A stretch of DNA of 63,619 bases, filler included, from Pelomyxa schiedti (GCA_020536535.1; 13 parts of 13 records of this genome joined end to end with filler, not necessarily neighbours in it), one strand, 5' to 3'; counted from the first letter of the whole stretch, positions 4,960 to 30,216 are shown. Made by a program: numbers and translations. The notes: generated by a model from the letters alone, not told the origin.

Positions 4960-5126
4960 ATGCCATGGCATCAAATACAATGAAAACAAGTTTGAGGTGC
5001 GTTACTAGTAGATTGAGACCCTCAACGTTGGAGAAAAAAAAATTCTTTCCGAAGGAATGAAGATTGATGATGATCTGATCTTTACGGAAAAAATAACAAA
5101 AGAGACGCACGGTGGCTGTGGACAAC

Positions 5127-5592
5127 ATGGCATTGTGGGACGGTAGGTTCGTCGTGGAGTCGCTGCACGTCGGGGCCCTCGCCGCCAACTGCGTGTGCGT
5201 CGCCGACGTGGCCGAGGGCGTGGCCGCCATCTTCGACCCCGGCGACAACGCCCCCGCCATCGTCGACACGCTGCTGCGCCGCACCGTCGACCCCAAGATT
5301 ATGGGTGGCCGTGGCGCCGCCGACGCCGACGCGTCCGCTTCCCCGTCGGCGCCTTCTCCTCCCATAAGTGCGACTTCGGCTGCGACCACTGCGGCGTCGA
5401 CCGCCGCGACGGCAGCGAACACCGCGGCTGTCCCACAATCGCAAAACCAGCATGCCGAACCGTCGCCAAAATGCGATGGCGTGAGGGTTCGTGTTGTTAT
5501 GATTGTGCTGACACATTCACATATGGACCACTGTTTGGCTGTGCCCCAGTTGAAAAAGATGTTCCCTGATGCAAAGGCAAGGTTTCACTTTT
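5127..5592 (+). CDS. MBL-fold metallo-hydrolase, first exon of the duplicate copy (cut by gap)
   Basis: DPGD and THSHMDH motifs; near-identical to 13042-13510. Confidence 0.8.
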
Positions 5593-5692
5593 NNNNNNNN
5601 NNNNNNNNNNNNNNNNNNNNNNNNNNNNNNNNNNNNNNNNNNNNNNNNNNNNNNNNNNNNNNNNNNNNNNNNNNNNNNNNNNNNNNNNNNNN

Positions 5693-6279
5693 AGCACAAC
5701 CTACTGGCCGTTGTTGACGTTCCCCAAACATATGCCACTGGAACCCTGAAAGTTTTGAGCACCACCAGATGCACCTTTCCACCAAGCACTGTGGAACTCT
5801 GCAGAGAAACTGCTGTGGCAATGAAATGCACAAGTGGCCAAATTGTGTTCATTGTCGAGAAGATGTATGATGACACAAAATCAGAAGTGGCGTTTTCTGT
5901 GCAACAATCATCAAGCAGTGGTGGTCTTGTCCACGGTCTCTACAACGACCTGAACATCGTGAACGAAAACCGATGGGCCAGAATGTTGTGGGAAGTGACT
6001 GAGTCATTGTTCTCAGTCTACAACCCCGTCCTTTCAACAGTGGATGTGTGGGACTGCAATGACCTCATCGGTGGTGCCACTGGTGCCAATTGCAAGCCAA
6101 AGACCACCATTGAGCATGTTGGTGCTGCTCCCATTGCAGGTGGTGGGTTCATCTTCCATGTCACATCTGACACACTCCAAGTGGTTGAACCATCATCAGG
6201 CCTTGTTGTTGCTGGTATTACATTTGCTTTGCCTGGTTGTAATGTTATACTTGCCCGTTATGATATTGTTGATCACTGA
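5693..6279 (+). CDS. C-terminal part of a beta-rich family protein (5'-partial after gap)
   Basis: Open frame with SLFSV..VDVWDCND...GGFIFHV...VVEPSSG family motifs. Confidence 0.65.
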
Positions 6280-9190: not shown

Positions 9191-11606
9191 TCAACGTTGC
9201 CCAAGGTTCAGAATTCTGAGTTTAACAATGGCATCAAAATGACCAAGGGAAGCAGCCCACAGCCACAGTCTCTGTGCCTGATGAATGTCCTTGGCAAAAC
9301 CATCCACACCTTTGCTGTAACGCAATGCAAGGTAGTGCAGTGCCTGGGCACTACCAGCATCAGCCGCCCTCTGATACAACATCACTGCCTTGTGAATGTC
9401 TTTGTCAACACCACTGCCATTTTCATAACAACAACCAAGGTTGCACATTGCCTGAGAAAGGCCAGCATCAGCAGCCCTCTCATACAGTGTGACTGCCTTG
9501 TGACTGTCCCGGCCAACACCATTGCCGAGTTCATAACACAAACCAAGGTTGCACATTGCGTTGGTATCACCAGCATCAGCAGCCCTCTCATACAGTGACA
9601 CTGCCTTGTGAATGTCCTTGTCAACACCATTACCGAGTTCATAGCACAAACCAAGGCTGCTCATTGCGTTGGTATCACCAGAATCAGCAGCTTTCTGATA
9701 CAGTGACACTGCCTTGCTGGGATTCCTGTCAACACCATTGCATCTTTCATAATACACCCCAAGGTTGCACATTGCTTTGGCATCACCGGCATCAGCAGCC
9801 CTCTCATACAGCAATACTGCCTTGTGAACATCCTTCTCAACACCACTGCCATTTTCGTAACACCAACCAAGGTTGCACATTGCGCGGGGAATACCAGCAT
9901 CAGCAGCCCTCTGATACAGTGACACTGCCTTGTGAATGTCCTTGTCAACACCACTGCCATTTTTATAACACAAACCAAGGTTGAACATTGCCTTGGCATC
10001 ACCAGCATCAGCAGCCCTCTGGAACATTGACACTGCCTTGTGAACATCCTTTTCAGCACCACTGCCATTTTTATAACACACTCCAAGGTTCCACATTGCA
10101 ATGGCATCACCAGCATCAGCAGCCCTCTGGAACATTGACACTGCCTTGTGAACATCCATGTCAACACCACTGCCATTTTTATAACACAAACCAAGGTTGC
10201 GCATTGCGATGGCATCACCAGCATCAGCAGCCCTCTCATACAGTGTGGCTGCCTTGCTGGGATCCCTGTCAACACCAGTGCCTCTTTCATACCACAAACC
10301 AAGGTGGCCCATTGCGTTGGCATCTCCAGTATCAGCAGCCCTCTGATACCACAACACTGCCTTTTGAACATCCTTGTCAACACCACTGCCATTTTCGTAA
10401 CACAAACCAAGGTTGCACATTGCGCGGGAAAGACCAGCACCAGCAGCCCTCTCATACAGTGACACTGCCTTGTGAACATCCTTGTCAACACCACTGCCAT
10501 TTCTATAACACAAACCAAGGTTGAACATTCCAATGGCATCACCAGCATCAGCAGCCCTCTGATACAGTGCTACCGCCTTGCTGGGATCCCTGTCAACACC
10601 AATGCCTCTTTCATAACACACCCCAAGGTTGCACATTGCCTTTGCGTCACCAGCATCAGCAGCCCTCTGATACAGTGACACTGCCTTGCGAGCATCCTTG
10701 TCAACACCACCGCCATTGCCTTCTCTTTCAGAACACACCCCCCCAAGGTTGTGCGTGGCCACGTGGGTTTCCTTGCCAACACCATCGCCATTTTGACAGC
10801 ACACCCCATGGTCATGCATGTCCTGGGCGTGGTCAATGTGGCGTCGAGTTGGAAATTGGTCCCATGTCTCAGAGTGATGATGCTCAAGGACAACCCACAC
10901 GCACGCACGTGTCCTGTTGTGCACTGTGTCAAATGCGAGCTCCTTTGTGGCTGGTGGGAGGTGGTTGAAATACTCTTGTGGGATGCGGTCTGTGAAGTGG
11001 CAAAGATATCGGTTGATGTTTGGTTGGTGTGCATCTGAAACTGAAGCAACAGTGTACTCATTCTGAGAGAGGAGGGAAAAAAAAAGAAATCAGTTCCAGA
11101 CAGAAAACAAACGAAAACAAGTCCCAGAAACAAAAAGCAGAAGAAGACACAATGCCTCAAAGTCATTATCAACACTTGTTGTTGCTGTGGCAGTGAAACC
11201 ATAATTGAAAAGGGCCTTGAGTACATATGACTGATGCTTGAGCAACTTGGGGTGCCCCAACCCAATGCACTTCACCTCAAACCCAATCTCTGTCATGTTT
11301 GTATGTCTGTTAAGGTCCCATACAGAAAAAGAAAAAAAAAAGTGGCACTCCCCCACCCCGCCTAGTGCTATGATTTGGTTGAATCACACACGCACCGTCG
11401 CACCCTTGTGAGATGACTCTCACGAGCCTGAAGTTTGATGCCACGACCACGCTCCCCTCGGCTGTGTTTTGCACGTTGTCGACGACGGCGGCCGAACGCC
11501 CAAGCCTCGCGAAGAAAGCGTCACGCTCACGAATCGCGCTCTGAAACTCATAGCGGCCACCAGCAAGGTCCGACGACGTGGTGGTTGTGCTTTTGTTGTT
11601 CCCCAT
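9191..11606 (-). CDS. Kinase N-lobe / Sel1-like repeat protein (exons about 11606-11396, 11289-11156, 11062-9191)
   Basis: About 13 regular 36-aa (108-nt) SLR units (AMCNLGxCYxNGxGVxKDxxKAVxLYxRAADAG). Upstream exons give a G-loop-like ISQGCD, VLKALFNY, QPNINRYLCHF and a hinge-like VVLEHH. No HRD or DFG. Confidence 0.85.
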
Positions 11607-12868: not shown

Positions 12869-13041
12869 ATGCCATGGCATCAAATACAATAAGAAAACAA
12901 GTTTGAGGTGGGGCACTTTGTTGACTATTGAATTGTTGACACCTCACCCTAACCCTAGGTTGGAGAACAACAATTCTTCCCGATGATCATCTTTAGAAGA
13001 AGAAAAAATAACCAAATCTTCGCACGGTGGCTGTGGGCAAC

Positions 13042-14198
13042 ATGGCATTGTGGGACGGTAGGTTCGTCGTGGAGTCGCTGCGCGTCGGGGCCCTCGCCGC
13101 CAACTGCGTGTGCGTCGCCGACGTGGCCGAGGGCGTGGCCGCCATCTTCGACCCCGGCGACAACGCCCCCGCCATCGTCGACACCCTGCTGCGCCGCACC
13201 GTCGACCCCAAGATTATGGGTGGCCGTGGCGCCGCCGCCGCCGACGCGTCCGCTTCCCCGTCGGCGCCTTCTCCTCCCATAAGTGCGACTTCGGCTGCTA
13301 CCACCGCGGCGTCGACCGCCGCGACGGCAGCAAACACCGCGGCTGTCCCACAATCGCAAAACCAGCAAGCCGAACCGTCGCCAAACTGCGATGGCGTGAG
13401 GGTTCGTGTTGTTATGATTGTGCTGACACATTCACATATGGACCACTGTTTGGCTGTGCCCCAGTTGAAAAAGATGTTCCCTGATGCAAAGGCAAGGTTT
13501 CACTTTTCCTTTTTTTTGTTTCGGTTCTTTTGTTACTGCTATATTACTTCCGCGGGATATGAAATGCCTGGAAAGAAACAAAAACCTTTCTATTCATTGT
13601 GCTTATCTTTGACACAGATTGTTATGCATCCAAATGATGTGGCTATGTATAATGTACGCCTCTCTTTCATCTAGAAAATGTTGCTTCTTTCTTGTTCTAA
13701 TTATTCCATAGATTGTTCCGCTGCAGTGCATGCTCTTTGGAATGCCCCCGCCGGAAGGCAATATGATGCCGCCAATGGAAGTTTCCTTGGCAGACCAGAT
13801 GGACTTGGAGATTTCCTCCGGCCTCAAAGCAAAAGTTTTACATACACCAGGGCATTCCCCAGGTTCAGTCTGTTTCTACTTCCCAGAGGTAATTGAACTC
13901 CGGTTTATTTTTCCAATCCAACAAACACACAACAGCTTAACAGGCTTCTTTCTGGAGACACACTTTTTCAGGGCTCTGTTGGCAGGACTGATTTACCAGG
14001 TGGTGATATGAATGCTCTCTCCACATCCATTAAAGGTAAACTCTTACCACTACCGGACTCCACCATAGTTATTCCTGGGTATGTTCTCCACTCTGGAATA
14101 ATTTAAAACCGCTAAGCACAACAAGGCACGGGGACATAACAACTGTAGGCCAGGAGAAGTCCTCAAATCCTTTTGTCCAATACATGGCCAAACTTTGA
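13042..14198 (+). CDS. MBL-fold metallo-hydrolase, glyoxalase II/YcbL-like (exons 13042-13491, 13618-13653, 13712-13888, 13936-14078, 14126-14198)
   Basis: The spliced product has all motifs in order: [55 protein letters not shown]. Confidence 0.9.
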
Positions 14199-16082: not shown

Positions 16083-18493
16083 ATGAAGTTCGCGGAACGT
16101 CCGAGTGACGTTGTACCTACGCCCACAATGCAGTCTTGCAAGGCTACAACTTCGACGTTGAAGGAATCAGCGCTGGCGATGCCGATGCATGCGGCTACGA
16201 CGCCGGCGGCCTCGAGGGGATCGCCGTGCACGGCGCTCTCGTCGCGGGCGTCGTGGGTGCTGCAGGTGTCGCGGGCCGTGTGGGAGCTCGTGGTGGTGCC
16301 GCTGGTCGTCGCCCCGCGCGTCGCCCGCGGCGTGTGCCTCACCTCCCGCAAGAGCACGTGGCTCGCCGGCCTCGCCGACGCCCTGTTCCCCCTCGTCCCC
16401 AGGGTCTGCCGCGCCATCCTCCTCGCCACTGCTTGCGACGGCGACTGCGACGACGACGGATGCGGGGGGAGCGGGCGCGCGAGGGGGGATAATGGGACCG
16501 GGCGCCGCCGAGGGGGTTGTGGCCACGGCGACGGGGTGATGGCGGATCTGGCTTGCTGCTGGACGTCGCACACGTCGAGGTATTATGGGTTGGAGTGCGC
16601 GGCGAGGGCTGGGAGCGTGAGGTGCGCGGAGTGGATTGTGGGGAAAATGGTGCGTCCCACAATGAGGAACAACAGGAAGGAATGCATTTCTGTGCTGAAG
16701 GGCCTGTGTGCCGGTAAGTATTACTCACTTATTCAATTCCATTCCGTTATGCTGTATCAGAATATATTGAATAAAAAATAAACTTTCAATAGAATTGTAT
16801 GAAAAATTAAAATTTAACAGTCTATAAATAGGCGGGCATGTTGCCATGGCACAGGAACTTGTTGGTAGTGTTGATAGACCATGGAGGGGAGGCCTCCTAA
16901 AGTGGCCGGCAAATGACCCTGACTTGCTGGATGATATGCGGAGCGCAACTGACTCTAGTTCACACTGCAGCCTCCTGTGGAGTGCATGTGAAGGTGGCCA
17001 CCTTGAGGCTGTCAAGTGGGTGATGTCAAGGTTTGGTGTTGGAAGGGAGGTGTGGGAGGTTGTGGCTCCATTCCAGGCTGCACTGAGAAAGGGCAATGTT
17101 AAAGTTGTAAAGTGGTTGGCATGCTCCACTGGTGTTGTTGGGTCTGGACAGGCAGTGTTCACCACTCCGCATCACTGTCATCCTGGTGATTTCTTGGAGG
17201 TTGTGAAGCTCTGCATGGGGTGGTTCCCTGAGCAAAAGAGAGGCACATTTGAGGAAGGGAATATGATACTGCACAGATTTATTCACTGCTGCTGCTCACA
17301 AAATGCTCCCCACATGCTTCTAGAAGGTTGCCAGTGGCTCAAGGAAACATTGTCAATTACACAAATGCGTTCCCTGGAATACATTACAAATAAAACAGCT
17401 TTTCAGTGGGCAATTGAAACCTTCTCTGTCTCACCAACACAGCAGATTCTGTGCGGCATATGTAGAAATGGTGCCGAGAAGGAGCTGGTGCAGTGGTACC
17501 TTCAGACCTTTGCACCTAGTATTGGGCCTATTGCTCCAGAGACCTTCATTGAAGCATGTGGCAAAACTACTGTGTCAGTGCTGAAGTTACTGTTACCAAC
17601 AACTCCACCTCTCACAGTAGACAACCTCCAACAGGCACTTGAGAATTCCCTCAATGAGAACAGCATCATTACGGCAGCGTGGTTGGATGAGACATTTCAT
17701 GTGATGGAAAGTTTCAATGGAACCCCTACGAAGGTGAATTCAGTGTTCATTAACCTCTGCAGTCCCAGTGGTGTGAAATGGTTCCTATCTAAAGTGTCAC
17801 CACACAATATTAGCGAGAAAGCAGTGAGGAATGCTGTTCATCGCAGTGTGGATTCTCTTCACTTTGCAGTGACACTGTTTCTACTCAGGACATTCAATGT
17901 CTCAGTTACATTCCATCAAAAAGCTGCTATCAGGAGTGTTATTGAATGGGGGACCATCCAGCAAGCCAAGCAGATAATTTCACATGTTGTGTTCTCTTCA
18001 CCAGAAATGGCCACGTGTTTATCACTATGTGAGTGCATGCAGTCAAGCAAAACTGTAAGGTGGTTAATTCGGCATTTCCACTTGAATGAAGAACAAACCA
18101 AGATGAATGACAACCACCTTCTGCTCCTCCTGTTAAGGAACAACAAGAAAAAGTGTGCAGAGTGGTTAATCCACAAGTTCCACATAACATTTGATCAAGT
18201 ATGTTATACTTCCAGGCACAACTTTCACTAACTCTCTCCACCCCCCTTTTTTTTTTTGATTGTTTTTGATTGCCCTCAAGTTTACCAAAATGGTTACTAA
18301 GCACCACTTGGCAACCACAGGCCTGGAAACATGGAGAATGCTACTTTGTGTGTACCCTGAAATGACCGCCGAGTTTGTCAAGACACACCTGATGAGCTGC
18401 ATTGTGGGAACACCCTTGCACAAACAACTAGCGATACGGAGATTTGGGCTCTCTCCTGATGACTGGTTGTTGTACGATTTTGATTCCCTCTAA
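16083..18493 (+). CDS. Degenerate ankyrin-like helical repeat protein (introns 16714-16831 and 18199-18280)
   Basis: ACEGGHLEAVKWV and ALRKGNVKVVKWL motifs; phase-compatible GT-AG introns join three ORFs. The start could instead be 15996. Confidence 0.8.
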
Positions 18494-18626: not shown

Positions 18627-21600
18627 TTAGTTCCTTTGAGAAGAACTGCTGCTGCTGGGTTTCTTTGAAACGCCACGCCAGTGGTTCAGGTTATCCCATG
18701 CCTGCGATTCCAGCATGGCAAAGTTGGGGAATAGGCCTTTCAGAGCTAGTAGAAGTGGTACTACAAACAGGGGAACGAACGAATTCTGTAGGGTATTAGT
18801 ATTTTACGTTGGCACGTTTTGATTCATGTAATTTTACTTATTAACGTTTACCGGAATGTATTCCGTGAAGGATAAATTACTACGAGGGAAGGGCACAAAC
18901 CTGCATTTCCAGTGCGCTTGCAGTTCCGTCCATGAACTTGGAAGTGGGAAGTCCCCTCGCTATCTCGTCGGCACCTTGTTTGCAGAACTCCTTCATGAGC
19001 CTGTTGGTCCACTCCTGGCAAACCTCCCACTCGCGGTATGCATTGCTGATATCGGCCGCTTTCAGAAGAAGCTGCAGAATCAGCATCTTCCCTTGAGGGG
19101 TATGTGCAACGAAACCGGCTTTGTCTTGGTCACCCTCGAGGGTTCCCTCAGCAGGAAGCCATGCCTTGAGTGCGTCAACCAGTTCAACGTGCTTTGCCAT
19201 GTCCGTGGCACAGATCAACTTGAAAACCAAGTTATGGATTTCTATCTGCTGCTGTGCCGAAAGTCCGGAAAGTGGCATGCATTCGGGGTCAAGTAACAGG
19301 GCACTCATTGCAAAGGCAGAATGGGACCGCTCAAGTGGTGATTCCATGAAGGTTACAAAAGTCTGGTGGAGAGTGTTCTTCAGGAAAACGTTGTTGCGGC
19401 CAGGGTGCTTGTAATCGTGCGACGCGGCGGCGATCGCACACGCAAGGCGTTCCATCGGTGTGATTGTGGCCGAGAACTGTGGTGATGCTTTCTCGGCCAT
19501 GGTGAGAAGTGAGTGGAATGCTTGGGTGACATCCGCCGCGTGGTATTTGTTGTGGTAGGGATTCTCGTATGGTGTTGGTGGCTCCTTGGAGAGTACTGGA
19601 TGAGGGTCCGAGCAGTAGTCAAGTTCCAGTTTTCGTACCCATTGCATTAGGAGCTTATAGTTAACCTGGCTAAACTGTGATGGAATCTGCTCTTCCAAAA
19701 GGACAGAGTAAAACACGGACTGCAAAACGCAGTCTTGGCCGACGGTGTTTCCAACCTGAATTGCGGGAATGAGTGCGTGGAAAGGGCTTCTAATTGAAGA
19801 ACAACCTGGAAAACGTTGAATGCCCACGGAGTCACTGGCGCTCGTGGAAGGGACAATGCTGTTTCACGATTTCCGGTTGACCCCACTTCGAGGTCCAAAG
19901 GATAAGCAGTGGTATGGTGTTCCATTTCAATTCCACAGTCATGGACGAACTGCTTTTGATCGGAATTCAACTCTGTCATGGTCTTGACGACTAGAGGAAA
20001 TTCAGTACAAGGAGGTGATTTAACTTTCGTACCTTTGAAATCCCTGTGCAAAAGGAGGTGTCTTGCATCAGCTAACAGTTTCGCATATGTCTCGGTGATC
20101 CCCTTTTCAGGGTGTTCACTCATTTCCCGAAGTGCTTCAGTGATCTGTTTAAGAAGGTAAGTGTGTTGAAAAAGCCCACAAAATATCTATACATCTTTCA
20201 TTCCACTTGTGAGAGCATTGACCGCGGCCATATCCTTCTGCACTTGCCCAAGACTCCTCGAGTTGGACTTCATCTCATCCAACTCAGTGCTCAAGTCGGC
20301 AATTTTGGCTGTCAGACCCGCATACTTCCTCGTCAGAGCACTGTACGCTCCAATGGCTCCAGCTGCAACGACCATCGAAATTCCGAGAATCGTAGAAATG
20401 CAAATCATCAGAACCATGGCGTATCTTTCATCTTCAGTTGCCTTCTTTTCATCAACAACCGAGATGACAATCCACCTTGATCTGGGAACGTAGCCCCAAG
20501 AGATGAACCTGCTTCCCGTGGCGAACTGAATGGTTGCGATGTATGTTTCCGTGCTGTTGAAGTTGTCCAGAGTGGGCTTGATAACCTCCGCAATGTGTTG
20601 ATAACGTGAGTTGGAAAAGATGTTCCACTGTGTGAGGTTATAATTGGGTGTCTCCAGGATCTGGGTGTAGTTGAATGTTCCGTCCGGTTCTTGGTAATCT
20701 TCATCCTCTCCACTCACCCAGTCAGCTGATCCCGCCTCGGGAATCATCATCAGAGTCCCGTCGTATGAAACCAGAACAACGTAAGCGCCAGAAGAAAGCT
20801 CTTTGGTCATTTCCGCCACCTGTGTGATGATCTGTGTGACGAATGCATCCATTCCGCATTGTCCCAGCGATCCCGTGAATCCCGTATTCGGGATTCGGGA
20901 GTCGTAGAGCGAATAATATACAGATGAGACCCATTTCTTCGATACTTGGTCAATATAAGGATCGACCCACGTGAATCCTCTTTCGTCGGCTACTCCTTCT
21001 AGAGGCCGTTGCGTGTCCATAATCTGGACGACAAACAGAGGGAAATAAGGATAAATCATGGAGAAGCCGTTCTTTCCAATATAGTACATCTGCGAAACGA
21101 CATCCACCCACGCCTCCTCGAAATTGGCCATAAGCGGTGCCATTGCACCAAGCCTCCAGAAGTATCTCTCAACGATTTCCTGCACCTGAGTTTCATTGTA
21201 GTTCTGTGCCATGAACAGAACTTCAGCCGGTCCTCCAAAAGGCGCAAGTGTTGCATAAGCCCTACACCCAGGACAGTCTGGCCGCGTGTAGTTCCTAATG
21301 AATAGGGTCAAAGGGGAAACGAAAGAAAGAAAGTACCAGTAGCCGTAAGTTGCTATTTCGGAGGCGGGAGGAATTCTTGGGGTGTCGAGGGCGTCAGCCA
21401 TGGTTCGACAAAAAGCAAGTAAAGAGGGCTGCACAGTTTCGCAAAATGTTGTAATAGGACCTGTCGGCGATAGTGAATAAATGTATGCAAAGAGAAGAAC
21501 AAACGGGAGAAGCGAAAAGCCGAAAAACGAAAAAAAATCAAAAAAAAAAAAAAAAAAAACACAAACGAAACGACAAAAAAGACGCAAGTCCCGAAACCGA

Positions 21601-21941
21601 AAAAAAAAAAAACAACGCATACCAGTTACGGTCGCGGTAGTCGACTCGACGTAGATCCTGGTCTGGTCCGAAATGGTGTCGACGAGATTCACAGCGAACA
21701 CGCTGACGACGACGGCGCCGGCTGCGGCCACGAGCGCGCAGCACACGAACAGCACCACGACCACCCACTCGGTCCCGCGCCACAGGCGGTGCTCGCCCTC
21801 GTCGGCGTTTCCGCCGCGGCGCCTCTTGCTGCTGTTGTTGTTGGTGTTGGTGTTGGTGGCGCCACCAGGTGGGCCCCCGAGCTTGGGAGTCCTGGAGTGT
21901 GACGCTGGCCTCGGTGTTGAGTCCCTCAGTTGGTGGTGCAT
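18627..21941 (-). CDS. Receptor-type class I cyclic nucleotide phosphodiesterase with dCache-like sensor, copy 1 (multi-exon)
   Basis: TM1 WVVVVLFVCCALVAAAGAVVVSVFAV. Cache-like FTWVDPYID...GMD...YVVLVSYDG...RWIVISV. TM2 MVLMICISTILGISMVVAAGAIGAY, then a coiled coil. PDE motifs YHNKYHAADV, HDYKHPG, LERSH, TDM, ADISN, EF..QG, and Q|NSF in the last exon. Confidence 0.92.
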
Positions 21942-22572
21942 CGTGTGTATAGAGAGGTAGTTGTAGTAGGAGTAGGAGTTAGGTGGTATAAAACAAAACA
22001 AACAAGGTGTTGTTGGGTGTTGTTGTTGTGGTGTTTTTGTTTTATTTGTTTTGTTTTTGGTTGTGGTGGTGCGTTTTCTGTTTATGTTTATGGTGGTGCT
22101 TTCTTTTGTTTTGTGGGTGAGTTGTGTTCTTTCTTTGTGAGTTGAAAAAATTATTTTAGGCTTCGGCACTTTGTTTTGGTTGCTGGGATGTCGGTTTGTT
22201 CATGGAAACCTTCCTTATTTGGGAGTGTTGCTGCTGCGGGGTTTAGGCGCCGGTGATGTCGCTGATGCGTGATTCTGTGATCGCACCTTTTAGATGGAAA
22301 AGATCAACTCACATATCCACGGAACCTGGCACGCCGAGGTGATGAACTGTGAGAAGCATAAAGAAAAAAAAAATTTTAATTTGAACTTCAAAAAAACCAA
22401 AATGGCCAAAAAAAAACCTGTGTGAAGTGTGAGTTTGTTTGTTGTGTGAAGGTGGGTTATGCAAGGAAAAGTGTGGGAGTCACACCTTGATGCCTCAAGG
22501 TTTGTTGCGGATTTCGGGAGTCATCACACTCCCTGCTTGTTGTTGTTGTTGTTTGCATGAGTATTGGTCCCT

Positions 22573-25500
22573 TCATGGTCGGGGAATGTGTAACCCCTCC
22601 AGCGGTTCAAGTTCTCCCATGCCAGTGTTTCAAGTGCCGCAAAGCTCGGGAATAGTCCTATAAGTGCCCTCAGAAGCGGAATCACAAACAGTGGAACGAA
22701 GGAATTCTGTTGTATTGTAAGAATCCGGCAATTTAGTGCAAGGACCTACCTGCATTTCCACGGCTGTTGCGGAGCCATCCATGAACTTGGAAGTGGCAAG
22801 TCCCCTTAATTTCTCGTCGGCACCTTGTTTGCAGAACTCCTTCATGAGCCTGTTGGTCCACTCCTGGCAAACTTCCCACTCGCGGTATGCATTGCTGATA
22901 TCGGCCGCTTTCAGAAGAAGCTGCAGTATCAAGAGTTTCCCTTGTGCAGTAGTTGCAACGAACCCGGCTTTGTCTTGGTCGCCCACGAGGGTTCCTTCAG
23001 CAGGAAGCCACGCCTTGAGTGCGTCAACCAGTTCAACGTGCTTTGCCATGTCCGTGGCACAGATCAGCTTGAAAACCAAGTTATGGAGTTCAAGCTTCTC
23101 AGCAGAGAGAAGGCCTTCAAACGGTACACATTCGGGATCAAGGAACAAGGCACTGAGAGCATAGGCAGAATGGGACCGCTCAAGTGGTGATTCCACGAAA
23201 GTTACGTAAGTCTGGTGGAGAGTCTCCTTCAGGAAAACGTTGTTGCGGCCAGGGTGCTTGTAATCGTGCGACGCGGCGGCGATCGCACACGCAAGGCGTT
23301 CCATCGGTGTGATTGTGGCTGAGAACCGTGGTGATGCTTTCTCGGCCATTGTGAGAAGTGAGTGGAATGCTTGTGTGACATCCGCCGCGTGGTATTTGTT
23401 GTGGTAGGAGTTCTCATATTGTGGTTCCTTGTCCGAGGAGGATGCTGGATTTGCGGCAGTCGGATCCGAGCAGTAATCAAGTTCCAGTTTGCGAATGAAC
23501 TTCATCAGAAGTTGGTAATCCACCCTTGGAACTTGTGCGGGAATCTGCTGTTCCAAGAGGACAGAGTAAAACACAGACTGTAAAACGCAGTCTTGGCCGA
23601 CGGTGTTTCCAACCTGTATTGGGTGAGTGCTACTGCATAGATTTAAATGAAGAACAACCTGGAAAACATTGAACGCCCACGGAGTCACTGAAGCACGCGG
23701 AAGGGATAATCCTGTTTCATTAGTACCGGCTACTACTCCTTCACAGTTGACAGGATACGCGGCCGCATTGTGTTCCATTTCAATTCCACAGTCATGAACA
23801 AATTGCTTTTGGTCCGAGTTCAACTCCGTCATGGTCTTGACGACTTGAAAAATATATCAGTGTTATTACAAGAACAAAGGGGACCTCACCTTTGAAGTCC
23901 CTGTGCAAAAGGAGGTGTCTTGCCTGCATCAATAATTTCAGGTATTCATCAGGGACTCCCCTGTCAGGGTGTTCACTGATATCCCGGAGTGCTTCAGTGA
24001 TCTGTTACAGGTAAGTTTGGAAAATATGCAAGAAGTGTTTACCTCTTTCATCCCGCTGGTAAGAGCGCCAACTGCGGCCATATCTTGCTGCTCCTGTCCA
24101 AGACTCCTCGAGTTGGACTTGATCTCATCCAACTCAGTGTTCAAGTCGGCAATTTTGGCTGTCAGACCCGCATACTTCCTCGTCACTGCACTGTACGCTC
24201 CAATGGCTCCAGCTGCAACGACCATCGAAATTCCAAGAACAGTCGAAATACAGATCATCAGAACCATGGCGTGTCTCTCGTCTTCAGTTGCCTTCTCTTC
24301 ATCAACAACCGAGATGACAATCCACCTTGATCTGGGAACGTAGCCCCAAGAGATGAACCTGCTTCCCGTGGCGAACTGGATGGTTGCGATGTACGTGTCT
24401 GGGCTGTTGAAGTTGTCCAGAGTGGGCTTGATAACCTCCGCAATGTGTTGATAACGTGAGTTGGAAAAGATGTTCCACTGTGTGAGGTTGTAATTGGGTG
24501 TCTCCAGGATCTGGGTGTAGTTGAATGTTCCGTCCGATTTCTGGTAATCTTCATCCTCTCCACTCACCCAGTCAGCTGATCCCGCCTCGGGAATCATCAT
24601 CAGAGTTCCGTCGTATGAAACCAGAACAACGTAAGCGCCAGAAGAAAGCTCTTTGGTCATTCCCGCCACCTGTGAGATGATCTGTGTGACGAATGCGTCC
24701 ATTCCGCATTTTCCCAGCGATCCTTCAAACTCATTTGGGATTCGAGAGTCATTTAAGTCCACGTAGATAGATGTAACCCACTTCTTGGTTACTTGGTCAA
24801 TATAAGGATTGACCCACGTGAATCCTCTGTCATCAGGAACTCCCAGCAGGTTAGCCTGAAAGGAAGTCATCTCTACTTTGTACAGCGGAGCATAAGGAAA
24901 TATCATAGAGAACCCGTTCTTGCCAACGTAATACATCTGTGACAACACATTCACCCAGGCGGATTCCAAGTTCTCAATCACAGGCGCCATCCCACCAAGC
25001 CTCCAGAAGTATCTCTCAACGATGTCCTGCATCTGAGAGTCATTGTAACGCTGTGCCATGAACAGAACTTCGGCCGGTCCTTCAAAACTCGAAAGTGTTG
25101 CATAGGCAGTACATCCAGCACAAGTTGACTTGGTGTAGTTCCTGTTTGAAACGTGGGTTAAAGGAAACTCCATTCAAAACCACCATAATAATGATAAAAA
25201 AAACAATAACAGGTGATTGGAGAGGTAGAAAAAATACCAGTAACCATAAGTCGCTATTTCATCGGCGGGAGGAGTCCTAGGAGTGTCCAGCAAATCGCCA
25301 ACGTCTTTGCAAAATGTGAGCACAGCCGGTTGTACAGTCTCGCAAAACGAGGTTATGGGTCCTGCACACATCGAAGCGTCATCGTCTCATCAATTCAATA
25401 AAGTTCAGTTGAAATAACCAAAACGTGATTGCAAGAAAAAATCAAAAAACAAGCGCTAACTCCCGGCAGCTACGAAACACAAACGAAACGTCAAACAAAC

Positions 25501-25856
25501 GAAACGCCGAAAAAGAGGAACAACAAAGGGTATGAAGAAAAACAGGGAAAAAAACAAAGACCCTACTAACCAGAAACCGACGTGGTTGTCGACTCGACGT
25601 AGATCCTGGTCTGGTCCGAAATGGTGTCGACGAGCCTCACGGCGAACACGCTGACGACGACGGCGCCGGCTGCGGCCACGAACGCGCAGCACATGAACAG
25701 CACCACGACCACCCACTCGGTCCCGCGCCACAGGCGGTGCTCGTCCTCGTCGGCGTCGTCGCCGCGGCGGGGTGGCCCGTTGAGGAACTTGCTGGGCGAG
25801 ACTGAGGCGCCTCTAGGCGGCGGCACCGCGTTTTTGGTTTTTGGGGAGGAGGGCAT
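22573..25856 (-). CDS. Receptor-type dCache-like phosphodiesterase, copy 2 (multi-exon)
   Basis: Same architecture, intron pattern and intact catalytic motifs as copy 1. The last exon ends WRGYIPRP*. Confidence 0.92.
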
Positions 25857-26513
25857 TCGGTGCTGGGTTGGTGCCTGGGGGGTTACTTTACACTCGTATT
25901 GGTGTGGCCTTGGTGTGGCCACTGGCTTCGATTTCGTTTTGTTTGGTTGTGTGTGTGTTGGTGGTGAACGAGTGTTCTTGTGTGTGCTGTTATCTAACAT
26001 CGTTGTTCTTTTTGGTGTTTTTTGTTTTTTTTTTTGTTTTTCTGTTGCCTTTGTGGTTGGCCGCTCTTGGTTTTTTTATTTTCTCTTTGCCAACTCCACG
26101 TTTTTCCTTGGGTGTGTTTTCTGTTTAAGGCCATTTTTGACAAATCATCATCAAACATCTGATGTTTCGCGACTTGGAATGCCGCCGGGAAATCAATTTC
26201 CTCCGGGCGTTGGTGCATTTTTTCCTTGCCGGCAATGAAAAGCTTGGAACTTTTGCAAAGTCCAACTTGGTGTTCAAGGCCAATGTTCATCGATAGTATG
26301 TGAAACGGGGTTCACAAAAGCCCAATATTGGAAAGTGGATGCTTGTTTTTTGTTGTATTACAACAGGAAGTGGTACTGGCACAACCTGTGGCTTGTGGTT
26401 GTTACAACACTTTGGTTGCTGGTGCCTGTTGTGGGTGACTGGAAGTGCATGCAGGCGAGTTGTGGTTGTTATGCTACATAACCATCGGTTTGTGGTTATG
26501 ATGTGGGATTGCG

Positions 26514-26845
26514 GGTTTGCGGTTTGTGGTTTGCGGTTTGCGGTTTGCGGTTTGCGGTTTGCGGTTTGCGGTTTGCGGTTTGTGGTTTGTGGTTTGTGGT
26601 TTGTGGTTTGTGGTTTGTGGTTTGTTTTGTTGTGCAAACGGTGGAATTATGAATCCAGTGGTTTGCGTGATTAGTGCTTTGCGGTGGTGCGGGCGTTTTG
26701 TTGCGATGCGGATGAGCGNNNNNNNNNNNNNNNNNNNNNNNNNNNNNNNNNNNNNNNNNNNNNNNNNNNNNNNNNNNNNNNNNNNNNNNNNNNNNNNNNN
26801 NNNNNNNNNNNNNNNNNNGGTTTGTGGTTTGTGGTTTGTGGTTTG
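26514..26845. repeat. Heptamer microsatellite (GGTTTGC)n(GGTTTGT)n beside scaffold gap 26719-26818
   Basis: About 15 tandem units at 26514-26624, with the repeat and its flank seen again after the gap. Confidence 0.9.
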
Positions 26846-26891
26846 TTTTGTTGTGCAAACGGTGGAATTATGAATCCAGTGGTTTGCGTGA

Positions 26892-29800
26892 TTAGTGCTT
26901 TGCGGTGGTGCGGGCGTTTTGTTGCGATGCGGATGAGCGGGAACTGGGTGCTTCACTCTGCGAGCGCCACTGTTGAAGGTTGTCCCAGGCCATCTGCTCT
27001 AGTTCGTGGAAGTTGGGGAATAGGAGCTGCAGAGCCTTGAGCAGCGGAATTACGAAGAGCGGCACAAACGAGTTCTGTTTATTTATAAGTGAAAAGGGAC
27101 TGGGACTAAAAAAGTGAGGTCGAGGTTACCTGCATCTCCAGAGCACTTGCGCGACCGTCCATGAACTTGGAAGTAGGGAGATTCCTCAATTTCTCGTCCG
27201 CACCTTGCTCGGCGAATTCGTTCATCAGGTTCTTGGTCCATTGTTGGCACACCCCCCACTCTCTGTACGCATTACTGATATCTGCCGCCTTCAATAAGAG
27301 CTGAAGAATCAAGAGTTTTCCTGGAGGGGTAGCCGCAATTGCTCCGGCTTTATCTTCAGTGTTTTCAGGAACCCAAGCCTTGAGAGCATCAACGAGTTCT
27401 ACGTGCTTAGCCATGTCTGTTGCATATATCAACTTGGAAACCAGAGAATGGAAGTCCTGCCTCTGGTGGAGTGTAAATTGGGCCAGGGGTTGGCACTCAG
27501 GGTTCAAAAATAGGGCCGTGAGAGAATAAGCAGCATGTGACCTTTCAAGCGCAGATTCGACAAAGGTTACATATGTAGGATGGAAAGTCTCGCGGAGGAA
27601 TACATTATTCCGTCCCGGGTGCTTGTAATCATGTGAGACAGCTGCAACGAAACAAGCAAGCCTTTCCAGGGGTGTAAGAGTCGCAGAAAATTCTGGAGAA
27701 GCCTCCTCGGCACGGGAAAGCATAGAATGAAAGGCTTGAACAACATCGGCAGCGTGATATTTGTTGTGGTACGGATTGAATGGGGGTGATGCCTTGTCAC
27801 TGCCTGTGGATGAACAGTAGTCCGTCTCCAAGAAACGGATGAAACCCTGAAGATGAGGGTAGTTGACTGGTAACCCGGAGGAAGTAATGTGCTGCTCAGA
27901 TAATACAGAAAAGAACACAGACTGGAGAAAGTTGTCCTCACCAACTGTTTTTGCTACCTGGAGGCCTGTCAGTCGTTTAATCACATACACAAAGCACACC
28001 TCAAATACATTGAATCTCCAATTTCCAATTCCAGGTATTGTTTGGGTGGACAAGGCACAATCTGGTGCATTTTGACCTGGCATACTGCGGCTCATAAAGG
28101 TTTCTAGCATGGAGGAGGTGAGAGCGGTGTGGTCCATCTCAATGCCACAATCGTGAACAAATTGTTTTTGATCAGAATTCAGCTGCGTTGTTGCCTTAAC
28201 CACTGTGTCAAATGTAAGTACGTTATCATCCAGAGCAAGGTGGGGTTACCTTTGAAGTCCTTGAATAGTAACAAGCGGCGTGCATCCCGGACTCGTTCCA
28301 CCATCTCGGCTGTGAGAGGGGAATCTGGGTGATCAGCGATATCAACCAGTACTTCAATTATCTGGTGAATGTGAGTGTAGGTACAACAAACTATTTGTAC
28401 AAACAGGTTGCACGCCACTTGACAGTGCTTTAACTGCCGCCATGTCCTCTTGGTTTTGTCCACTCTTCAAGGACATATTTTTCATCTGGTCCAGCTCGGT
28501 ACTCAGGTCGGCAATTTTCGCACTAAGTCCCGCGTACTTCCTCGTCACTGCGCTGTATGCTCCAATGGCCCCAGCTGCAATGACCATCGCCACCCCAAGA
28601 ACAGTTGAAATGCAGATCATCAGAACCATGGCATTCCTCTCATCAGCTGTTGCTTTCTCCTCGTCAATGACCGAAATGACAATCCATCTTGAGCGGGGTA
28701 CAAAGCACCAGGATATGAACCTGCTGCCTGTCGCAAACTGAATGGTTGCTATGTGGGTTTCTGTGGTGTTGTACAGCTCAAGTGTAGGTGTAATCGCTTC
28801 TGATATGCCCTTGTACCGGCCATTAGAGAAGATATTCCACTCCGTCAGATTATAATCTGGAGTCTCTAAGATGTGGGTGTAGTTGAACGATCCATCAGGT
28901 TGCTGGTACTCTTTATCCTCACCGCTTACCCAATCGGCAGATCCAGCTTCCGGTATCATCATCAGAGTTCCATCATAAGAAGCCAGAACAACATAAGCTC
29001 CGTTGGAGAGGCTGGAAGTCATTTTGGTAACTTGACCGATAATCTGTGTGATGTAGGCATCCATTCCACACCTTCCAAGAGACCCTCCATACGGGTTCGG
29101 TATTCTGGAGTCATATAATTCATAATACACGGAGGTAACCCATTTCCTGGTTATTTTGTCGATATAGACATTCAACCAGGTGAACCCTTGGTCGTCAGTC
29201 ACTCCTGGCAGCGGAAAGTAGGTGTGGACCATTTGCATGAAGTATATAGGAAAATAGGGGTAAATCAAGGAAAATCCGTTCTTTCCCTGGTAGTACATCT
29301 GTGAAACAACCTCCGGCCAGGCAGACTCGAGGTTCTCAATTAGTGGCGCCATCGCACCTGTACCCCAGAAGTATTGTTCAACCATAGATTGAAGTTGCGA
29401 GTCATTGAACAGCTGAGCCATGAAGATAACTTGGCCTACCCCACCAAAGTCGGTCATTGTGGCATAAGCTTTGCACCCAGTACAACCAGATATGGTATAA
29501 TTCCTGGTGTAAACCTCAGAAGATGAAATGCGGTGTAGAAAAAAGTACCAAAATCCATAAGTTGCCACCTCGGCAGCAGTAGGAGTTCGGGGAGTGGTGG
29601 ACGCGTCAGCAACGTCACTACAAAACGCTTTCACGACAGGTTGCAGTGTCTCACAAAACGAACTTATAGGCCCTATGCAAAAGGCGTCAGAAAAAGAGAG
29701 GGTAAAAAATCCCAAGAAGGGCTTGCAACTTTTCTTTTTTACGTGTAATAAGTCGTAATAATTTACTATATTCTCGACTTCAAAGAAAACCTACCAGCAA

Positions 29801-30092
29801 CGGACGTAGCCGTGGATTCGACGTAAATCCTTGTTTGGTCGGAAATCGTGTCGACGAGCCTTACGGCGAACACGCTGACAACAACAGCGCCGCCCGCGGC
29901 GATGACCGCGCAACAGGCGAAAAGCACGACGGCGAGCCACTCGGCTCCCCGCCACATGTGGTCCTCGTTCTTGTCTCCTCCTCTGCGCCTGCCGCGATCA
30001 GAGTGCGAAGATCTAGAGCTGGTTGGCTCCGGATCTAGATCTACAACGTCGGGAGTGCGACGGTCTGTGCTGCGGTGGTACGCCTTCTCCAT
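26892..30092 (-). CDS. Receptor-type dCache-like phosphodiesterase, copy 3 (multi-exon, most diverged)
   Basis: TM1 WLAVVLFACCAVIAAGGAVVVSVFAV, the Cache-like region and TM2, then YHNKYHAADV, HDYKHPG, LERSH, TDM, ADISN and Q|NSF. Confidence 0.92.
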
Positions 30093-30216
30093 GTGTTGGG
30101 TTTTTTCTTATTGTGGNNNNNNNNNNNNNNNNNNNNNNNNNNNNNNNNNNNNNNNNNNNNTTAATTAATTAANNNNNNNNNNNNNNNNNNNNNNNNNNNN
30201 NNNNNNNNNNNNNNNN

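Follow-up and report, generated by a model that had tools for sequence, protein, structure and literature searches.

We examined an array of three tandem genes at positions 18627-30092 of a stretch of Pelomyxa schiedti DNA (GCA_020536535.1) of 63,619 nucleotides, filler included; this whole stretch is called the window, and all coordinates are counted from its first letter. The array lies on contig C463 (window 3978-30116) of an assembly of 52 Mb in 5337 contigs, obtained from single-cell data. A first-pass annotation, made from the sequence alone, had described here three co-oriented paralogs, each joining an extracellular dCache-like sensor to a class I cyclic nucleotide phosphodiesterase (PDE). 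Our gene models agreed with this description, and placed all long open reading frames (ORFs) of the array on the minus strand, which the annotation had not specified. Sequence comparison and modelling supported the reading of each gene as a two-pass membrane receptor, with a predicted order of cytosolic tail, first transmembrane segment (TM1), dCache_1-type domain, second transmembrane segment (TM2), linker and class I PDE.

Gene structure and transcripts

Gene models were built from coordinates and then compared with the NCBI Pelomyxa schiedti proteins P0001-P0003, which all bear only the name "cAMP-specific 3',5'-cAMP phosphodiesterase 4". Gene 3 (g3; 30092-26892, minus strand, 948 aa) has exons at 30092-29795, 29672-29549, 29503-28405, 28361-28250, 28202-28000, 27957-27130 and 27074-26892, and its product was identical to P0003. 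Gene 2 (g2; 26000-22524, minus strand) encodes 998 aa from the ATG at 26000, or 950 aa if read from the annotated start codon at 25856, and the choice of ATG was the sole difference from P0002; its exons lie at 26000-25571, 25361-25238, 25141-24043, 24001-23890, 23843-23659, 23613-22750 and 22706-22524. Gene 1 (g1; 21941-18627, minus strand, 951 aa), identical to P0001, has exons at 21941-21623, 21460-21337, 21294-20193, 20144-20033, 19990-19806, 19755-18901 and 18785-18627. Each gene is composed of seven exons and six GT-AG introns at positions common to all three, and the 18 introns measure 41-209 nt, most of them 41-55. Exon 3 encodes the bulk of the dCache ectodomain together with TM2 and the first part of the linker (24043-25141 in g2 and 20193-21294 in g1, minus strand), while exons 6-7 encode the PDE catalytic domain (22524-23613 in g2, PDEase_I E 8.9e-51; 18627-19755 in g1, E 6.9e-53; minus strand). 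Exon 3 of g1 and g2 was 87% identical, compared to 33-74% for the introns, and all three reading frames are intact. Since the exons are conserved beyond the introns and no frame is broken, the array is not a product of chance.

Three of the introns (g1 intron 2, 42 nt; g3 intron 2, 45 nt; g3 intron 5, 42 nt) are in frame and free of stop codons, which allows gene callers to read through them. The paralog P0004, as annotated, contains a 14-aa insert exactly where intron 2 sits in g1-g3, and this is probably an intron retained in the annotation. Intron 2 of g2 must be spliced out, because it contains a stop codon and a change of frame.

Contigs from four single-cell RNA-seq runs of one study were compared with 26819-30116. 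The RNA contigs skipped exactly 28404-28362, 28249-28203, 27999-27958 and 27129-27075, the four intervals modelled as introns 3-6 of g3. One RNA contig of 2365 nt ran from 29370 to 26819, that is, from the sensor exon through TM2, the linker and all PDE exons into the 3' untranslated region (UTR). The sensor and PDE exons of g3 are thus carried on a single spliced transcript, which rules out their belonging to separate genes. Low-depth contigs at 29459-29763 (run X1, records 3 and 4) extended unspliced through intron 2 of g3 into intron 1; these could be pre-mRNA, genomic carry-over in the single-cell libraries, or true intron retention. At 27646, in PDE exon 6 of g3, the contig of run X1 had G where the genome and the other runs had A, and the difference may reflect allelic variation, error or editing.

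Between g3 and g2 lies a microsatellite with a 7-nt unit (TTGCGGT / GGTTTGT; 26509-26846, in the intergenic or 3'-UTR region), whose repeats at 26509-26624 and 26819-26846 enclose an assembly gap at 26719-26818. The microsatellite is probably the cause of the gap, and yields spurious Pro/Thr-rich ORFs in several frames. We considered whether the gap breaks a gene and rejected this, as the stop codon of g3 at 26892 lies 73 nt ahead of the gap, and the gap is upstream of the ATG of g2. No reading frame therefore depends on continuity across this 3'-UTR or intergenic interval.

Domains of the encoded proteins and their family

Hydropathy and flanking charges placed TM1 of g3 at aa 52-77 (29862-29939), after an Arg-rich cytosolic tail (aa 1-51), and TM2 at aa 432-460 (28546-28632), followed by a basic TRKY. 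The ectodomain between them (aa 78-431; 28633-29861, spanning introns 1-2) measured 354 aa, in keeping with the roughly 350-400 aa of the first-pass layout, and was assigned to a divergent dCache_1 sensor by profiles, structural modelling and fold matches. A cytosolic helical linker (aa 461-603; 28027-28545, spanning introns 3-4), with weak coiled-coil-type matches in Pfam, leads to the class I PDE catalytic domain (aa 604-925; 26964-28026, spanning introns 5-6; PDEase_I E 4e-56); all of these features are on the minus strand. Basic residues are found on the presumed cytosolic side of both transmembrane segments, five of the six N-x-S/T sequons of g3 fall within the ectodomain and none in the PDE domain, and the Cache region has six cysteines. 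We infer that the ectodomain is extracytoplasmic, held between two transmembrane segments of which TM2 leads to the output. Identity among the paralogs was 58-81% in the ectodomain and 59-83% in the catalytic domain, with the linker and tails less conserved.

A word-indexed homolog search with the window proteins returned four Pelomyxa paralogs only. The paralogs P0009, P0019 and P0042 gave sub-threshold dCache_1 matches (E 5e-5 to 4e-4), and P0009 passed MCP-like_PDC_1 (31.8 bits, cut-off 27). A HMMER profile of the ectodomain found 78 relatives among 1.84 billion representative proteins, the closest of which were proteins with a sensor between two transmembrane segments followed by PDEase_I, from Pelomyxa, transcripts of Mastigella eilhardi and metagenomes. 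The 59 more remote relatives included 51 with Pfam dCache_1, 42 with HisKA, 41 with MCP-like_PDC_1 and 7 with Guanylate_cyc, and the named ones that we looked up were bacterial sensor kinases, for example from Haliangium, Gulbenkiania and Tolumonas. When a profile made from Pelomyxa sequences only was compared by hhalign with 25 bacterial histidine-kinase sensors, the two aligned over 311 columns (99.7% probability, E 6.5e-27), and a profile of 19 PDE-linked ectodomains alone matched two solved dCache domains, those of Mlp37 (E 1.3e-9) and Mlp24 (E 1.7e-7).

The inclusion of bacterial homologs in the alignment used for folding was justified by these profile E-values. An AlphaFold2 (AF2) model of the ectodomain, made with 67 aligned sequences, reached a predicted local distance difference test (pLDDT) score of 92.6 and a predicted template modelling score of 0.89, and consisted of a 47-residue N-terminal helix (residues 2-48) and two alpha/beta modules. 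Every top Foldseek match of this model was a dCache ligand-binding domain (probability 1.0). Alignment to solved dCache domains with VIA-align gave Z scores of 16-20 and a root mean square deviation of 2.6-3.5 Å over 230-250 residues, spanning model residues 1-355, and the best match in the ESM Atlas was a bacterial histidine kinase (TM-score 0.74). A Cache/PAS-like fold, on which the first-pass annotation depended, is therefore predicted, and on the evidence of profiles and models the ectodomain is a homolog of dCache_1 with the same fold.

All three genes matched PDEase_I (PF00233) with E of about 1e-51 to 1e-56; scores were 184-191 bits for P0001-P0003 and 173-180 bits for the exon ORFs, against a cut-off of 24.8. 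The nearest solved structures were PDE4D and PDE4B (E 7e-33, PDE4D best). Residue alignment to PDE4D showed that the equivalents of H160, H164, H200, D201, H204, E230, H233, T271, D272, D318, N321, Q369 and F372 are all present, and the metal and substrate columns (HNxxH, HDxxH, ExxH, TD, the Asp of ADxSN, and the Gln and Phe clamp) were invariant in four paralogs. The intact catalytic motifs noted at first sight thus stood up to comparison residue by residue. When the full-length proteins were scanned with Pfam at E up to 1, no UCR1/UCR2, GAF, PAS or HAMP domain appeared, and the proteins are therefore not PDE4 in the subfamily sense.

Intersecting PDEase_I and sensor-profile matches across the genome gave at least 16 loci at which PDEase_I is preceded on its own strand by a sensor 1-2 kb upstream (contigs C463, with three genes, C1202, C741, C912, C455, C876, C821, C1066, C278, C936, C88, C910 and C257). 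The three genes first described are thus part of a larger family. About 145 exon-level PDEase_I matches were present in the 52-Mb genome, a very large complement of PDEs, in line with the expansion of PDEs and guanylate cyclases in the Mastigamoeba genome (PMC8136499). The sensor-PDE fusion was also found in Mastigella transcripts. Proteins of Pelomyxa (P0026, P0049), Mastigella (P0020) and Mastigamoeba balamuthi (P0034) carry a sensor of this dCache family fused to Guanylate_cyc/adenylate cyclase domains. Two of the Pelomyxa proteins are labelled 'response regulator' at NCBI.

A quick maximum-likelihood tree was made of 19 PDE-linked, six cyclase-linked and 42 bacterial kinase sensors. The PDE-linked sensors clustered together (Shimodaira-Hasegawa-like approximate likelihood ratio test, SH-aLRT, 81), and with the cyclase-linked ones formed a set (SH-aLRT 99) apart from the bacterial sensors. 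The window genes and P0004 made a tight clade (SH-aLRT 100) in which g1 and g2 split last (97), and the tree identifies the three genes as recent tandem duplicates in the order (g3,(g1,g2)).

Two intron-less dCache-PDE genes, P0011 (970 aa) and P0014 (1019 aa), were encountered on long metagenomic contigs (L001, JGI, 365 kb, and L002, ENA, 85 kb). Their neighbours are mostly without Pfam matches, those of P0014 including KilA-N and Skp1. They possibly derive from a giant virus, but uncultured relatives of Archamoebae seem the simpler source, because the ectodomains of both nest among Mastigella sequences.

Other ORFs on the contig have no evident functional link to the array. A 577-aa ORF with 13 Sel1 repeats (E 9e-143; 9191-10924, minus strand) and a 461-aa ankyrin-repeat ORF (16846-18231, plus strand) adjoin it. 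An ORF of metallo-beta-lactamase fold occurs in two copies (5112-5717 and 13027-13674, plus strand), separated by about 7.9 kb and sharing 97% identity over 160 aa. A run of N at 5593-5692 interrupts the first of them, and the pair is a segmental duplication on the contig.

Proposed control by a ligand and its alternatives

The most economical reading of this architecture is that an extracellular ligand controls the activity of the PDE, and we consider this probable, with room for doubt. The receptor would be a homodimer, as are bacterial dCache receptors. A small extracellular molecule would bind the membrane-distal Cache module and displace TM2, and the displacement would run along the linker helices and alter, upwards or downwards, the activity of the paired PDE domains. 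Chemistry outside the cell would thus set the breakdown of cAMP and/or cGMP with neither a G protein-coupled receptor (GPCR) nor a G protein. The presence of the sensor family on nucleotide cyclases as well suggests a system in which sensors control the synthesis of cyclic nucleotides in addition to their breakdown.

In PctA, Y144 and D173 contact the amino group of the ligand (PMC10589655). Alignments to PctA and Mlp37 showed that the equivalents of both residues are kept (Y177 and D212 of the ectodomain, corresponding to Y254 and D289 of P0003), as are the Y-x-D strand and a later G-x-D strand. Most of the 19 PDE-linked members retain the pocket Tyr and Asp, D289 being present in 16.

A number of observations weigh against this account of the receptor. 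Pfam dCache_1 (PF02743) did not match the window proteins at E up to 1, either as ORFs or at full length, and the assignment proposed at first thus failed in its direct form and was recovered through profile homology and the predicted fold. AF2 given the four-paralog alignment alone reached a pLDDT of 36.5, from which no fold was concluded, and the confident model therefore leans on an alignment in which bacterial relatives predominate. In sequence alignment, the RPWY segment of PctA, with its carboxylate-binding R126 and W128, had no counterpart upstream of Y-x-D. The AA_motif of dCache_1AA domains (R126, W128, Y144, D173; PMC8915833) is thus incomplete for want of the Arg/Trp pair, because of which the class of ligand cannot be read from known motifs. 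At the output, the equivalent of PDE4D Y329, which fixes selectivity for cAMP, is a Cys; the substrate is therefore unreadable from the sequence, and the 'cAMP-specific' of the database name is unproven. RNA confirmed introns 3-6 of the predicted g3 transcript but not introns 1-2, where the sole contigs are of low depth and unspliced, and the junctions of these introns rest on paralog comparison because RNA coverage is thin at the 5' end.

The proposed path of transmission was not supported by modelling either. A homodimer model of residues 455-948 scored 0.55 compared to 0.00 for the best control, with at least 50% of contacts agreeing between runs and a partner pLDDT of 71; 21 of 30 solved homodimers attained this mark, and none of 23 solved monomers did. 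The confident contacts, at aa 734-786, are confined to the catalytic domain, for which the predictor may have memorised solved PDE dimers, and the absence of any confident contact in the linker is what leaves the path unsupported. The coiled coil that the first-pass annotation had placed after TM2 was not confirmed: the occupancy of heptad a/d positions was 5-6 of 8, and the dimer model, which neither supports nor excludes a coiled coil, placed no confident contacts there.

The main rival takes its strength from the same observations. The protein could be a constitutive, membrane-anchored PDE whose Cache domain has lost sensing and serves dimerisation, localisation or adhesion, any regulation of the PDE being cytosolic. 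The incomplete ligand motif, the failure of Pfam dCache_1, the lack of a recognised transmitter such as HAMP between TM2 and the PDE and the silent linker of the dimer model would all be expected of such an anchor. However, the ectodomain is conserved to the same degree as the catalytic domain, and the pocket Tyr and Asp persist in most PDE-linked members. At least 16 genes with diverged ectodomains form the usual pattern of a chemoreceptor family, the same sensor family drives cyclases, and bacterial dCache receptors also reach their outputs without HAMP. We therefore regard a mere anchor as unlikely, and ligand control as the better account of the family.

If the sensors do bind ligands, these may be amines or other compounds with an amino group (methylamines, polyamines or ethanolamine from prey or symbionts) and not amino acids. 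Amine-binding dCache_1 domains keep D173 and aromatic residues and lose R126 (PMC10589655), and the retention of the Y144 and D173 equivalents together with the absence of R126 follows this pattern. Amine binders (3lib, 3li8, McpX, TlpQ and PctD; Z 17.5-18.2) were among the best structural matches of the ectodomain, but amino-acid binders came within one Z unit, which amounts to a tie. The motif argument is one from sequence alignment, and D289 is not invariant in the family. We hold this refinement to be a speculative one, rather doubtful as it stands.

A third possibility is that the topology is inverted, with a cytosolic Cache domain and an ecto-phosphodiesterase that degrades extracellular cyclic nucleotide. 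Amoebozoa use extracellular cAMP, and surface PDEs of Dictyostelium degrade extracellular cyclic nucleotide; with two transmembrane segments and no signal peptide, the orientation of the Pelomyxa proteins is unproven. Against this, the Arg-rich tail and TRKY fit an N-in/C-in arrangement, the sequons and cysteines gather in the Cache region with no sequon in the PDE, and homologous sensors are all periplasmic or extracellular, which makes an inverted protein very unlikely.

An artefact of annotation or assembly that falsely joined two genes, or bacterial contamination, could be imagined in a fragmented single-cell assembly with a gap inside the interval and in an organism that carries bacterial symbionts (PMC10579272), but was rejected as extremely improbable given the single spliced RNA contig from sensor exon to 3' UTR, GT-AG introns in both halves at identical positions in three paralogs, the recurrence of the fusion in Mastigella transcripts and at no fewer than 13 further loci, and the intergenic position of the gap.

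On a wider view, which we advance tentatively and with somewhat less than even confidence, Archamoebae may have acquired a bacterial-type dCache domain without VWA insertion and wired it to both cyclases and a large PDE family. This would give a GPCR-independent form of chemosensing, in which dozens of receptors turn extracellular metabolites, possibly amines of prey or symbionts, into the synthesis or destruction of cAMP and cGMP. Such a system would put a concrete molecular role behind the enlarged sets of guanylate cyclases and PDEs in Mastigamoeba (PMC8136499). A ligand-gated PDE would be a new route of input into eukaryotic cyclic-nucleotide signalling, and would indicate that the bacterial design, with sensor, transmembrane helix and second-messenger enzyme in one protein, can operate in a eukaryote too. 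On this view the three tandem genes would encode receptors that diversified recently, and would offer a natural starting point for PDE tools under chemical control.

Comparison with known systems

Class I PDEs are known to be regulated from inside the cell, the modules involved being GAF, PAS, UCR, calmodulin or receiver domains. The literature searched, which covered few subscription journals and in which absence is not proof, gave no account of a class I PDE coupled to a Cache domain; this agrees with the first-pass annotation, which knew of no characterised example. Within that literature, the proteins combine a known sensor and a known enzyme in an undescribed way and in an unexpected lineage. 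The novelty claimed for a single-polypeptide receptor holds for the pairing of Cache with PDE, but the fusion of a receptor to a PDE has a precedent in rhodopsin-PDE.

The closest known counterparts of the sensor are in bacterial dCache_1 histidine kinases and chemoreceptors (PctA, Mlp37/Mlp24) and in mmHK1S-Z2/Z3 of Methanosarcina, which share TM1, a double PAS-like module on a long N-terminal helix, TM2 and a cytosolic output. The Pelomyxa proteins have the same fold at Z 16-20 and keep the Tyr and Asp that contact the amino group, but differ in the absence of the Arg/Trp pair, in an ectodomain about 100 aa longer than solved dCache ligand-binding domains, and in an output that is a eukaryotic class I PDE and not a kinase, methyl-accepting chemotaxis protein, GGDEF or EAL domain. 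The genes are eukaryotic, with spliceosomal introns. Similar logic is seen in bacterial dCache-EAL/HD-GYP proteins and dCache-class III cyclases, where an extracellular Cache domain controls the turnover of a nucleotide messenger. Their catalytic fold and messenger are different: the EAL and HD-GYP enzymes act on cyclic di-GMP, whereas the Pelomyxa output is, by its sequence, an HD-superfamily class I PDE for 3',5'-cAMP/cGMP.

Among eukaryotic proteins, animal alpha2delta and CACHD1 also have an extracellular dCache_1 domain, and appeared among both the profile and the fold matches of the ectodomain. Their domain is split by a VWA insertion and is not joined to an enzyme, in contrast to the uninterrupted, bacterial-type dCache of Pelomyxa between two transmembrane segments. 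All eukaryotic dCache_1 proteins found in an earlier survey carry this insertion, with their function in eukaryotes unknown (PMC8915833), and the Pelomyxa domain runs counter to that generalisation. Mammalian PDE4 is identical to the Pelomyxa catalytic domain at all metal- and nucleotide-binding residues, but the Pelomyxa proteins have no UCR1/UCR2, have Cys at the position of Y329, and use their N-terminal 600 residues as a transmembrane receptor.

An analogous eukaryotic design is found in green algae, where a predicted extracellular sensor of a different family, CHASE, is joined to PDEase_I. The nearest cluster by language-model features (0.89) was an ESM Atlas cluster of 151 eukaryotic proteins, with Chlorophyta as the commonest taxon, PDEase_I in all and CHASE in 17%. 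It may represent a second, independent family of PDEs with extracellular sensors; no paper on it was found, and no search was aimed at algal CHASE-PDE proteins.

To our knowledge, the light-gated rhodopsin-PDE is the only characterised receptor-PDE. This choanoflagellate enzyme, Rh-PDE, is the closest characterised fusion of its kind, and hydrolyses cAMP and cGMP on stimulus without a G protein (10.1101/2020.04.14.040642, PMC7644710). Like the Pelomyxa proteins, Rh-PDE unites a membrane sensor, a helical linker and a class I PDE in one polypeptide. The sensors are not homologous: in Rh-PDE, light is sensed by a multi-pass microbial rhodopsin, whereas the Pelomyxa proteins, in which Pfam found no rhodopsin family and which have two N-terminal transmembrane segments only, carry a Cache domain whose stimulus is presumably chemical. 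A PDE controlled by a small molecule, if this is what the Pelomyxa genes encode, would complement the optogenetic Rh-PDE as a means of lowering cAMP or cGMP on demand.

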